A stretch of 64,000 bases of DNA from Zygnema circumcarinatum SAG 698-1b (lineage: Eukaryota; Plantae; Zygnematophyceae): contig CM074804.1 in NCBI GenBank assembly GCA_037447605.1, positions 8,347,909 to 8,411,908 of the forward strand, in the 5' to 3' direction. Of this stretch, positions 51,169 to 59,014 are shown piece after piece. Within the stretch, counting starts at the first letter, position 1. Every line of letters starts with the position of its first letter. The position numbers and the translations under genes are program-made. The notes beneath the pieces are model-generated. The model saw only the letters and a list, made by a program, of their open reading frames with translations. It had not been told where the DNA came from and ran no database searches.

Positions 51169-54100
51169 TCAATACGAGCGTTGGAAAGCTGCTGAAATGC
51201 TGATAGGATATCGAGGAGGATCTTGATCACCTTGAAGCAAGATTAACTCTACGACATAGGACAGAGGATATCGTTGTCCTCTCGCGTCGTCTATGAGCTT
51301 TCTGAACTGCTCTTGTCTCTGTACTACGACGTCGCATATGGAGCTTGCAACATGAGTCACCTGACTACAATAGAATCCATCATTTAAAAGACCGAAGGAG
51401 AAGGGGAGAGGAGTCAAGGAGGGGGAAGGGAGGGGGGAAGGGGAGGGGAGGGGGGAAGGGGTGGGGAGAGGGCGAGGGAAGAGGGAGAGGGAGGGGGAAA
51501 GGGAACAGATTGAGGAGATGGCGATTTTCGAACGACGGTATTTCACTTGTCTTATGAGTTAATCTTGCCGCCGTCTCCCTTTTTTTACGGTTTTTAGGTT
51601 TACGGCGAACAGCGACAGAGAAGAAAGAGATAAATAGGGGCATAACCTAACCCCTTGAGGGTGTCATGATTTAATCCAAGCCAAACCAAGCCAGGACAGG
51701 GTGGGCCAAGTTTGAGCCAACCAAACCAACCAAAGCCAAGCCTCAGTGCTTCAGTGTGCGAACCATTAAATCAACGAAAATTGAAGGGCGAACCATCCCG
51801 CAGCCGTTAAGGATTTGGCGACAAGCTATGGTTCTTGCACTCTCCTAATACTTCATTAGGGCAAGTAAATCGAGATCTACTGAAAAGTAAAGTTGAAAGT
51901 AAAGTCGTAAATTTTGATAACATGTGCCGACAATAATAAGCATAATGATAAGCAATTTTGGGTTGATCGCGGTCCAGCCCGAAAGAAACGCAACGGAGGC
52001 TCGGCTTTCCCAGAAATGTGTGCTTCGGGTTCAGAATGACACGAGACAGAACAGAGAAGTGTAATAAAATGAAGAGGGAGAATGGAGCGCAAGGGAAGGG
52101 AACAAGCCAATAATCGCTTGACACACGATGGGAGTCTGGTACGCACCATAATGGGTGGATTATTGCTTGACGGGGGGGACATATACATCTCCTTCTCTTT
52201 CATACGGAGCTGCATTCATCAGAACGTGCCACAATAGGTGGATCCCCCTCCCACCACCCAAGAAACAAAATAAGGGACGGGCTTGCAGCGAAAGTATGAC
52301 CGATAGTAAATAGGAGAGGGAGACACTCTCACTTTCCCCCAACGTTCCCAAACAGAACTATCAATTGCAGTACTAAGAAATGCGGCACAAAAAACAGACC
52401 ACGATGAGGCCATCCATCACGCAGCAGGAACACACCCAAAATTGTCCAATGCATTGTGTAGAACAGCTGCCCCAACAAACACGATTCATCCTTCAACCCC
52501 TTCCCACGCCCTAATGCAAGGGCCGTACCTCTTTGAGCCTCGAGCTCAAACTTGAGCACCATGAGATCAGGAACGGAGCTTTGACCAATCAAAGCGAACG
52601 CCCTCCTCCGCAGCTCGTTGGCTGCCTCCCGGTTCCCTATGGCTTCTTCTGTACAGACCAGGTCTGCTAGGAGGAGCGCCAGTCCTGAATAGGAGCTCCC
52701 GCTCGCACTTCCATGGACCAAAAGAGCTCTCTGCTGGAGGCTCAAAGCCTCGCCAAGATTGCCCTAGAAAAACAGCAAAAAAGTCATGCATAACTACAAT
52801 TAGCTGAGGTTTCATTGATGTCAGTCAGTCAGTTTTCTTGTGGAACTTGCATGCCTCTACAACTTGACCACCTAGCTCCTCCGTTTACTGAGGGACAAGA
52901 GCGAGCTTACGGTCATAAAAGGACCCTCGCCATACTCCAATCTCCATACCTGTGCATAGTGCAGCCTTCCGAGAGCTGAGACAATGTCTCCCACTAAGGG
53001 ATGTCGGCCCCCCAACTGATCTTCCAGCAATTTGAGAGCTATTTCGAGGTCTTTCATGGCTGCCTCTGCATTTCCTGACAGCCACTGAGCAGCAGCCTGC
53101 ACTGTAAGAGTTTGCCCGACACTAACGCGTTTGGATGGCCCAGCAGCTTCATATATAGCCAGAGCTCTCCATGCGCTGACTCGAGCACCCCTCACATTTC
53201 CTCTTTTTAGCTGTACAAGAGCAAGAGGGACAAGCCGTTGAGGCAGCACCGCGAGCCCGTCCTCTTTCGCTGCATCTGCAGCAGCCATTTCTAGCATCTT
53301 TTCTGCAGCTTCTAACTTTCCGAGTCGCTCGTAAATCAGTCCTAAGATTTGCAGAGCACCATTCTGCAAAGCGAAGTAAAAGTTATCTTTGGGAGTATCA
53401 CCAGACGCCCTCCCCTCCATAACTTTAGACACTCTGAGATAAGTGACTCTACGCTTACTGCTACTTTTATCTTCCATCAAGCCTCCAATTCCCGGCAGCA
53501 ACATACTCCTTCCGAGCTTCCCTTTGAATGATTGCATTCTGCATTTCACCTCGACCTCTCCTCCCCTCTTCTTCTTCCTCTTCGCTTCTTCGTTCTTTGC
53601 CCATAACTCTGCAAACGTACGTGAGCTCAATGAAGCTCCCTGCCTTAAAGGCACATGAGGCTCTACCGGAAGGCTTAATTCCCTCCCTGTCCAAGTTTTC
53701 TGTCGTACCAAACACCTCTGTGTTACTGTCCGTGCCTCCCTCTCCCTTTCTCCTTTTCTCCAACGCTCACCCACCTCAGACCCGCTAAACGTCTGCCTTC
53801 TCTTTAATCTTATTTTATTAGGGGGCCTAATTACCAAGCCTAAGCCGAAATCATCATCTTGCATAGGCAGCTGTTCTTCAAATGCAGCCGTTGTGCTTCT
53901 TGTATCTTCACATTCCCCTACAACTCCCAGCAAAGCTTCAAGTAACTCCATTGCTTCTAGCAAGTCCTGCCTTCCTTGCGGCTCCGGCAGCCGAAGAGTT
54001 AAAGCAAGAAGCCCCTCAATATACGCCCTTAAGAAGCTGCTTGAGCCTTCGAGTGCAAGCAGCTTCCACAAAGTTTCGCCGGCTTCCCTCCTTTCTTTAG

Positions 54101-57100: not shown

Positions 57101-59014
57101 AAGTTTACTCAGTTACGGAAGATCATAGAAATCTGAGGAATTTCGCGGGAAATCAAAAAAAGTTCACCCACCTTGATATCCAAGATTCCAGCCAATGCCG
57201 CAAAACTCTCCTCGGCACAACTCATGTGTGCATCAACCCACAGAACTCCATCGTAATTTCCAAGATGCCGATAAGCATATTCCACAACAAACTCGGTTTT
57301 TCCAACCCCCTCCTCTCCTACCACGCAAATAACATTCTCCTGCAAAAGTACGAAGTCAACATCAAGAAATTCATCAAGAAATTTATCACTACGGACATCG
57401 ACGAGGAAACAGTGAAACGCACAAGTGAAGGAAGGTCATTGCTTCTCTGGAACAATATCACAACAACAACACAATAAAACAACACAAACAAACACAAAGT
57501 ATACAACAGGAAGACCTAGACTGACCGTTTTCGATGTGTCAAAACTCGTCTGTTGACTAGTGGGTGCTAATGGACTTTCACTTTGGCCATGGAGTACGGT
57601 ATACATGTCAGCCAAACCAATCTCCCTGCCGCGAAACAGAGGGTTTCGTGCAAATGGCAGAGAAAAGGGCCGGCTTGTTGGAGATTTTTTCCTGATGGAA
57701 AGTGCACGATACAAATCCCTCCTGTGCATGATCTGCATTATGCGAACGAGGTCTTTCTCGTACTTCTCTAAAACGTACTGAAGAGGGATATCATATTCAA
57801 AGTGTCCTCTCACGCTTGTACTTCTCAATACCTCCAGAAATAGCCCTACCTGCATGTCAAACCACACAAACCACAAGTGAACACGAACCCCTCGAATTAT
57901 TAAAGCCCGCAACGCCTTTCAATCTTGCTGTAGTGCTTCGCCATACACTTGTATGCACCACTAGACAGTAGTTCATCATTTCCATTCAAGTGTGCATGCC
58001 CACCTTTACGACAATGGCGGCCGCTTCTACAAAAATAGAGAGACAGTCTGATCTCTTGGTCATCTTTTGCAGGGGCTCCTCCAGAAACTTTAAAGCTTTC
58101 CACACCTTGAGCATTACCACTGGCTCATCTTCCCCTTCTGACGTCGATAAGATAAGGCCTCTTTGAAGGAAGAACAAAGTCACTCCGGCAAACTCTTTCT
58201 GCCAAAAAATCGAGAAAAGTTCATCCTTTCAAGCCCAAAACTAAGTAACGTTTTTACAAAGGATTTGAGAAAGAGTGAAGCCAGGGAAAGGAAGTTGTAG
58301 GAGAAATTAGGAACACGAAACGCTAGGACATGATGAGAGCGAGTAGTGCAGGAAAGTTTGCGAAAGAACAATTCTAAGGTCGGACTGGGAAAAGGCGAGA
58401 AAGAAGCCAATCTAGAGGAAGTCGAGTGTATTCCAGAATTGAGGAACAATGACAAGAAGGTATGAGGGAGGAGAGCAAGACAATTAAAGACAGGGCAACG
58501 TGAAGGCATGGCATAGTACCTCAGCCAGCTCGCTATATGCCACTTCCACCAAGCTTTGCATCATGTTCCCCATGATTTCTGCTGCATACTCGTTCCCCAT
58601 AGCCGCTACATTCAGTAGCACAGCATCCACCAAAGCTTTCGCAGCATGGTGAACGTCGCAGCCTCTGAGCTTTGGAATGTAGATTCCACTTTCGTGGATT
58701 CCTAAATGACCCTCGGATGCTCCCTCTACACAAGCTGCTGATTCCTCACTCCGTTCATCATTATCGCTCTGCTCATTCTCCATAGTAAGTAGTTTGGGAG
58801 GCTTTGGAAGAGGGGGATCAGTGGCATAGTCCTGATGGGTGGTCAGCTGGCAGGCGGTGAGAACGGAGAGAATCTTGTGAAAGCCATTGAGAGCGTGGCC
58901 GGTTAAAAAGTCAGTGAAAGATCTGTGCCGTTTGATGATGCTGCGAGGAGGAGGAGGAGCTACTTGCAATTTTGAATCGGATGAGCCTTTCTTATTCAGC
59001 AAGTGCAGAGGCAT
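51169..59014 (-). CDS. Non-canonical NLR-like STAND ATPase: helical N-terminal domain, NB-ARC, TPR array; multi-exon
   Basis: Pre-P-loop FSLPFARNPLFRGRE; Walker A GEEGVGKT followed by EYAYRHLGNYDGVLWVDA; Walker B FLLILDNVE; RNBS-B position HTIVTS; GLPL-like QLPLAL; MHD-like IHPVMQ. Kinesin-light-chain-type TPRs follow (ALMLAECIFPLGHYRIRGALWNLAFSY; ALKLLEDQLGGRHPLVGDIVSALGRLHYAQ). The start and the 3' exons (52200-51169) are uncertain. Confidence 0.85.

Follow-up and report, generated by a model that had tools for sequence, protein, structure and literature searches.

What kind of protein does an intron-rich gene of the alga Zygnema circumcarinatum SAG 698-1b encode when it couples NB-ARC motifs to tetratricopeptide repeats (TPRs), and what might such a protein do? 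The gene lies on the minus strand of a 64,000-nucleotide (nt) stretch of contig CM074804.1 (positions 8,347,909 to 8,411,908), referred to here as the window, and an earlier reading of the sequence (the original prediction) had taken it for an immune-receptor-like gene of fungal or bacterial style. We find that it probably encodes a STAND NTPase of the TPR-linked NB-ARC class, a member of a small and very divergent eukaryotic family that most likely works as a switch, as other STAND and NLR-like proteins do. The predicted product is about 1,500 amino acids (aa) long and follows what reads as the family layout: an all-alpha, family-specific head, the NB-ARC, a helical extension after the MHD-type IHP motif, long disordered inserts of low complexity, and C-terminal TPRs.

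The locus is a real, intact, intron-rich nuclear gene that is transcribed and spliced in this plant-lineage alga. Among public runs of the source organism, six DNA-like runs contain 0.99–1.00 of the words of the stretch, and about fourteen further runs contain 0.63–0.84, the share expected from exons alone. Transcript-derived (Logan) contigs from four runs, each of a different study, were aligned to window positions 53101–59100. Eight splice joints were seen, all CT..AC on the plus strand and so GT..AG for the gene, and a single 5,026-nt contig (run X19) carries exons 1–9 on one molecule from 59100 to 53101. Because these contigs lack the introns that genomic DNA would keep, and because exon-skipped and intron-retaining forms are also present, we read them as transcripts. 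Every splice site is canonical, and no joint interrupts the frame, which is open for 1,418 codons; the open reading frame (ORF) listing gives short coding blocks parted by GT..AG-ended stretches, plus one ORF of 862 codons. The original prediction had treated the exons as parts of one co-transcribed gene, and the joining of exons 1–9 across the four studies with eight introns removed confirms this. A pseudogene reading was rejected on the open frame and the spliced RNA.

The transcript extends at least 385 nt upstream of the ATG at 59014, which is the first in-frame ATG after a stop, the in-frame stop lying upstream of 59086. This start places the motif KILSVLTAC at the same N-terminal distance as KVLSVLTAC in the homologue P0002. 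In all four runs exon 9 is contiguous down to at least 53101. Internal introns in this large exon were accordingly rejected, and its low-complexity parts belong to the mRNA. Contigs of runs X7 and X11 leave out exon 2 without loss of frame (skip joint 57846>58517), X11 listing no joint to exon 2, and one X7 contig of low depth lacks exon 6, which encodes the RNBS-B strand, again in frame. In intron 7 (55799–56157), short contigs with loose ends at 55973 and 56149 run into unrelated GA-rich sequence, which could be intron retention or repeat-induced assembly joins.

Past 53101 the gene model is a prediction. A donor at 52950, after ..LHYAQ, is judged good from sequence and also fits the end of an X11 contig, and an acceptor at 52763 precedes GNLGEALSLQQRAL; joining the two carries the TPR on just as it runs in the homologues. 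One contig stops 152 nt past 53101, corresponding to the remainder of exon 9 plus one base common to the intron and exon 10, and an X7 contig stops 386 nt past 53101 (151+235), at the predicted exon 10 end of 52529. Assembly graphs that branch at splice sites give contig ends of this kind. We thus place a putative exon 10 at 52763–52529, carrying the last TPR helices (GNLGEALSLQQRAL..) and a C-terminal tail. The phase after 52529 is 1, and an acceptor at tattgtag/tcagg would bring a stop after two codons, giving a C-terminal tail of about the length of that of P0002. The original prediction had run the gene to 51169, a boundary that was not borne out: a terminal exon at 51370–51169 was rejected, having no phase-1-compatible acceptor and no similarity to the C-termini of the homologues.

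Profile and homology searches were run on single exons or on database homologues. The N-terminal part, about 340 aa, has no Pfam match. Its first ~120 aa, in exon 1, look disordered or of low complexity and include KILSVLTAC; the helical N-terminal domain begins in the same exon (AKALVDAVLLNVAAMG), continues in exon 2 (WKALKFLEEP) and ends in exon 3 (VGLFLEVL..YEKDLVRIMQIM), where the NB-ARC lead-in PFSLPFARNPLFRGRE follows. Alignment with relatives identifies the lead-in motif PFARNPLFRGRE. The ordered set of NB-ARC-type motifs described in the original prediction is then found complete, in order and on the minus strand: in exon 4 a Walker A of the GxxxxGK[ST] form (GEEGVGKT) together with EYAYRH..YDGVLWVDA, in exon 5 a Walker B (FLLILDNVEE) of the same form as the LLVFDNAED of bacterial NB-ARC-TPR proteins, in exon 6 the RNBS-B THTIVTSC, in exon 7 the GLPL-type LEQLPLAL, in exon 8 the winged-helix motif FGPHPIPSRLL, and in exon 9 the MHD-type LLIHPVMQAF, whose region reads LLIHPVMQAFSRSQ. 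Single exons match Pfam weakly (NB-ARC, E 0.02–0.03; TPR_12, E 0.011), with at most 14 bits to PF00931, against 33.1 bits for the homologue P0056 and a gathering cut-off of 23.5. Four exons match the NCBIfam model NF040586 (NB-ARC-TPR protein) collinearly, which, with an E value of 1.2e-12 for the P-loop exon, excludes chance.

Downstream of the NB-ARC, exon 9 holds a family-specific post-MHD block (ALC..DTV.HF..LW), a conserved helical block around 54635–54198 (QQ.LHDAF) set among low-complexity stretches, and, at 53375–52950, tandem TPRs of the kinesin-light-chain (KLC) type (TPR_10/TPR_12), which form a short C-terminal array of about four to five repeats. The Pfam scan found leucine-rich repeat (LRR) families in no exon, and with a TPR C-terminus the protein is not a canonical plant NLR. 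The proposal that TPRs stand in for LRRs therefore holds for the kind of repeat, but not for its extent: the stretch of ~630 aa that separates the TPRs from the IHP motif consists of one conserved helical block and long low-confidence, low-complexity stretches rather than a repeat array. When exons were compared one at a time with the PDB by phmmer, the matches were all generic, to P-loop or KLC proteins.

By sequence, the NB-ARC belongs to the TPR-linked class. The homologues P0056 and P0002 match FxSxx_TPR (NF040586) at E 6e-46 (157 bits) and 8.5e-37 (127 bits), respectively, scores that do not reach the family cut-off of 300 bits, while their matches to the Pfam NB-ARC family are 4e-8 or absent. 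The best solved relative of the family profile is AfsR (3.7e-5), compared with 0.18 for NRC1 and 0.27 for ADR2. The fungal or bacterial style originally proposed for this gene is thus upheld as regards the class of the NB-ARC, though not wholly. Like bacterial and actinobacterial NB-ARC-TPR proteins (NF040586; AfsR, PDB 8k60), the gene encodes an hP..RN..F.GRE lead-in, GxGGxGKT..EYAYR, an LLxxDN Walker B, LPLAL, an.IP..LL winged-helix motif, an H-containing MHD equivalent and C-terminal TPR_10/12 repeats. It differs from them in being eukaryotic with at least nine introns, in its N-terminal domain, in the replacement of the sensor-1 arginine, and in its family-specific post-MHD and middle blocks, long disordered inserts and short TPR array. 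Nor is it a member of NF040586 itself, since the FxSxx-COOH family denotes a bacterial operon with an FxSxx-COOH peptide, whereas this is an intron-containing eukaryotic gene.

Several observations weigh against reading the protein as a conventional NLR-like switch. The sensor-1 arginine (T[ST]R), present in 41 of the 46 other domains of the TPR-linked class, is absent from all three readable family members, being replaced by Cys here, Lys in P0002 and Glu in P0056, and the P-loop of P0002 is degenerate, so that nucleotide cycling in the family may differ from that of canonical NLRs. In addition, the TPR array is short, most of exon 9 is modeled at low confidence, and the C-terminus of the protein, stop codon included, is one that we infer. 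The shared loss of the sensor-1 arginine suggests a modified nucleotide cycle. It would also suit, along with the degenerate P-loop of P0002, a STAND protein with no part in immunity, such as a scaffold or a regulator (AfsR and MalT are bacterial examples), or a pseudo-NTPase with a decayed switch, a reading that we consider somewhat unlikely. AfsR, a transcription regulator, is after all the closest solved relative, the gene appears steadily in RNA contigs of several studies, and PADLOC matched no defense-system model; against this, the Pfam scan found no DNA-binding or enzymatic domain, and the Zygnema gene retains intact P-loop, Walker B, GLPL and IHP motifs.

We next considered the family to which the gene belongs. 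An exhaustive protein search with exon 9 gave five matches below 1e-10, with most matches arising through the TPRs alone and the gene's own protein not among them. Four of the matches are true relatives: P0002, P0056, P0004 (with P0156) and the metagenome contig L003 are collinear with the gene over its whole length, through the N-terminal motifs, the middle block and the TPRs, at 25–35% identity overall and 55% in the P-loop exon (P0056). Common to them and the gene, and absent from bacterial NB-ARC-TPR proteins, are the N-terminal motifs K[IV]LSVLTAC, A..LVD.VL..V..G, W/L.AL.FLE.P and K.G[LM]F[LI].V, the post-MHD block, and a middle block ending QQ.[LF][HQ]DAF(R). Because the N-terminal, post-MHD and middle blocks are all shared, we take the architecture to be old and fixed in the family rather than a recent assembly. 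The contig of P0002 has 41% G+C, against ~48% in the window, and P0002 thus comes from a different organism.

Other searches bounded the family. A word search with the 862-aa ORF was empty, the ~1,500-aa protein lying outside the length window and low-complexity words probably dominating. Word searches with the NB-ARC part of P0056 and with family profile A1 added bacterial NB-ARC-TPR proteins only, and a scan of metagenomes for words of exon 9 gave no relatives. The two best family-specific motifs occurred in none of 185,579 prokaryote genomes, and no contig of the JGI metagenomes was confirmed by tblastn. In the literature we found no description of this particular family, with its N-terminal motifs, post-MHD block and sensor-1 loss.

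These results bear on descent. In a tree of 48 TPR-linked NB-ARC domains, P0002 and P0056 pair with support of 96/95 and adjoin the bacterial proteins P0165 and P0158 (Deltaproteobacteria metagenome-assembled genome) at 88/79, within a clade of 95/86. Together with the bacterial origin of the nearest profiles, this placement would agree with a bacterial NB-ARC-TPR gene having passed into an ancestor among algae or protists and having acquired its introns and N-terminal domain afterwards. We hold this account to be quite unlikely: the sample is biased toward bacteria, with a single fungal protein (P0042) and no plant or brown-algal references, the long branches of the family (1.5–1.6) carry a warning of long-branch joining, the gene has at least nine introns, the family motifs are missing from the prokaryote genomes and JGI metagenomes searched, and any transfer must be ancient. 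The suggestion of horizontal acquisition in the original prediction was therefore not supported, the relatives coming from eukaryotic transcriptomes and from one metagenome contig with intron-like structure. Rather, we read the gene as part of a long-established eukaryotic family within the TPR-linked NB-ARC class; horizontal transfer in recent times is unlikely on these sequences, and a transfer of the family at an ancient date is possible. Among prokaryotic proteins, the one nearest to the family profile is P0165 (L002:6459-8753), which is 764 aa long, of NB-ARC-TPR type and short at its N-terminus; it is encoded on a gene-dense metagenome contig beside a GDSL lipase, a MopE-like protein and a CotH/LTD protein.

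In a Pfam search of the head up to E 5, neither exons 1–3 nor the N-termini of the homologues matched TIR, TIR_2 or another family, in keeping with the earlier remark that no TIR was recognizable. Modeling was done by proxy, folding residues 1–300 of P0002 with a small family alignment. The model is all-helical, without strands, and has a predicted local distance difference test (pLDDT) score of 65–85 in residues 80–250 and a mean of 60. On this model the head is helical and not a TIR. A Foldseek search of the PDB with the model returned nothing at E <= 0.001, a structure search of the Atlas gave TM values of 0.31 or less, and the resemblance to CC-R or MLKL bundles was below significance. ESM features of a homologue N-terminus lie nearest to fungal clusters with Goodbye, DUF7708 and NACHT_N (0.80–0.84), which we treat as a lead only. 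The head may be an executor-type module, a four-helix-bundle membrane or cell-death domain.

Could the gene instead be a TIR-less sister or derivative, by vertical descent and with a different head, of the land-plant TNP family (TIR-NB-ARC-TPR, formerly XTNX)? Both have C-terminal TPRs in place of LRRs and an NLR-like domain order, and the hidden Markov model of the TNP NB-ARC also retrieves actinobacterial and ascomycete NB-ARC-TPR proteins (Johanndrees et al., PMC9806590), the broad class that this gene matches; a 2022 preprint, moreover, puts the origin of TNPs in algae. However, the TIR that defines TNPs is replaced by an all-alpha head, and Johanndrees et al. found no TNP orthologues in two charophytes (PMC9806590). 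The absence of plant proteins among the word-search and exhaustive-search matches counts in the same direction, weakly, as the queries were dominated by TPR or family-specific parts. Overall we regard descent from or alongside TNPs as unlikely, and the earlier statement that the gene is not a TNP stands on its lack of a TIR. Fungal NB-ARC-TPR NLRs with HeLo, Goodbye or SesA heads (Dyrka et al. 2014, PMC4986451) likewise combine a helical module, an NB-ARC and KLC-type TPRs; the Zygnema gene differs from them in having no Pfam match to the fungal N-terminal families, TPRs that are not highly similar tandem repeats, and no fungal protein among its close matches.

If the protein is indeed a STAND switch, its TPR end would hold it closed and bind a ligand or a modified partner. 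Binding would then lead to nucleotide exchange at the NB-ARC and to oligomerization, and oligomerization would gather the N-terminal helical domains as the output, possibly a membrane or cell-death effector of the four-helix-bundle type, although this last step is at the level of a lead. A role as an immune receptor or in cell death is one that we infer from sequence. We further consider it a tentative possibility, on the doubtful side, that the gene represents an undescribed ancient eukaryotic NLR-like family, with a helical executor head, an NB-ARC without the sensor-1 arginine, a post-MHD module and TPRs, serving as an intracellular sensor or cell-death switch in algae near land plants. Were this so, the plant lineage would have two TPR-bearing NLR-like classes, this one in addition to TNPs, and the gene might show what came before, or arose in parallel with, immunity of the NB-ARC-LRR kind.

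The wider claim of an undescribed system was too strong. NB-ARC-TPR families are known in brown algae (PMC3341825), Acanthamoeba, fungi and bacteria, and one NB-ARC-TPR gene of Ulva is mentioned in passing (PMC8891106). Reviews have already noted NLR-like receptors of streptophyte algae with alternative C-terminal repeats and CC- or RPW8-like heads (PMC10952240, reviewing Gao 2018, Andolfo 2019 and Chia 2022/2024). These receptors and the brown-algal proteins resemble the present gene in combining an algal NB-ARC with non-LRR repeats, and a four-helix-bundle head is a possible further likeness to the streptophyte-algal receptors. The 2022 plant-immunity literature, for its part, recognizes no plant NLR-like class with TPRs other than TNPs (PMC9806590). 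The layout as such is thus known from fungi, bacteria and brown algae and barely described in green plants; new here are the lineage and a head and motif deviations not described for NB-ARC-TPR STAND proteins. As algal NLR-like genes are known mainly from surveys, a tractable case is offered by this NB-ARC-TPR gene, which is intact and expressed and whose conserved head is not a TIR. It bears on the form of STAND receptors near the origin of land plants, on whether a helical head can act as executor without LRR-based sensing, and on how an NB-ARC works without the sensor-1 arginine. If the gene is instead a housekeeping scaffold, it marks the limits of reading an immune receptor from architecture alone.

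Table 1 Exons of the gene, collinear NF040586 matches and relatives. Exon positions are those of the window after correction of the joints by their cut offsets.
Feature	Position or length	Strand	Basis and remarks
Exon 1, coding part	58520..59014	-	165 codons; contig joints; motifs common to P0002 and P0056
Exon 2	58004..58198	-	65 codons; joints 57847>58002 and 58198>58520
Exon 3	57526..57849	-	108 codons; contig joints; tblastn of P0002 193-299, E 1e-5
Exon 4	57172..57339	-	56 codons; NF040586 E 1.2e-12; 55% identity to P0056; contig joints
Exon 5	56786..56914	-	43 codons; Walker B; contig joints
Exon 6	56565..56660	-	32 codons; RNBS-B; contig joints
Exon 7	56158..56372	-	215 nt; GLPL-type motif; contig joints
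Exon 8	55646..55798	-	153 nt; winged-helix motif; contig joints
Exon 9	52950..55428	-	2,479 nt, 826 full codons; contigs down to at least 53101; donor 52950 predicted
Exon 10 (predicted)	52529..52763	-	235 nt; TPR continuity with P0002, P0056 and P0004; X7 contig end
NF040586 match, exon 4	model positions 28-83	-	E 1.2e-12, 47 bits
NF040586 match, exon 5	model positions 89-126	-	
NF040586 match, exon 8	model positions 237-269	-	
NF040586 match, exon 9	model positions 604-722	-	
Relative P0002	1,227 aa		Logan transcript contig of SRR8128907
Relative P0056	1,594 aa		EukProt
Relatives P0004 and P0156	1,502 and 1,503 aa		EukProt
Relative P0068	fragment		on L003, a 4.7-kb metagenome contig; gene calls resemble exons of a P0004-like gene

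Finally, we surveyed the surroundings of the gene. Rfam gave no match anywhere in the 64-kb window. Long CT/GA-rich low-complexity tracts occupy 29500–31700, 34800–38750 and 51380–51560; the ORFs that they produce on either strand, rich in Ser/Leu/Pro or Arg/Glu, are spurious, as with (RE)n at 36979–37250. A multi-exon gene at 3183–11892 (+) comprises kinase, ankyrin and Mind-bomb/HERC2-type SH3 repeat pieces, which we take to be the domain set of the plant E3 ligase KEEP ON GOING (KEG). At 47026–50795 (+), in convergent orientation to the NB-ARC-TPR gene and perhaps overlapping it at the 3' ends, lies an amine-oxidase-type gene with FAD/NAD binding that resembles carotenoid isomerase or phytoene desaturase. 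On the other side, about 1.7 kb upstream of the start codon, a Ty1/copia-type retrotransposon (gag, Pol beta-barrel, integrase core) spans 60695–63875 (+), with an assembly gap, seen as X in the translation, in its reverse-transcriptase/RNase H part.

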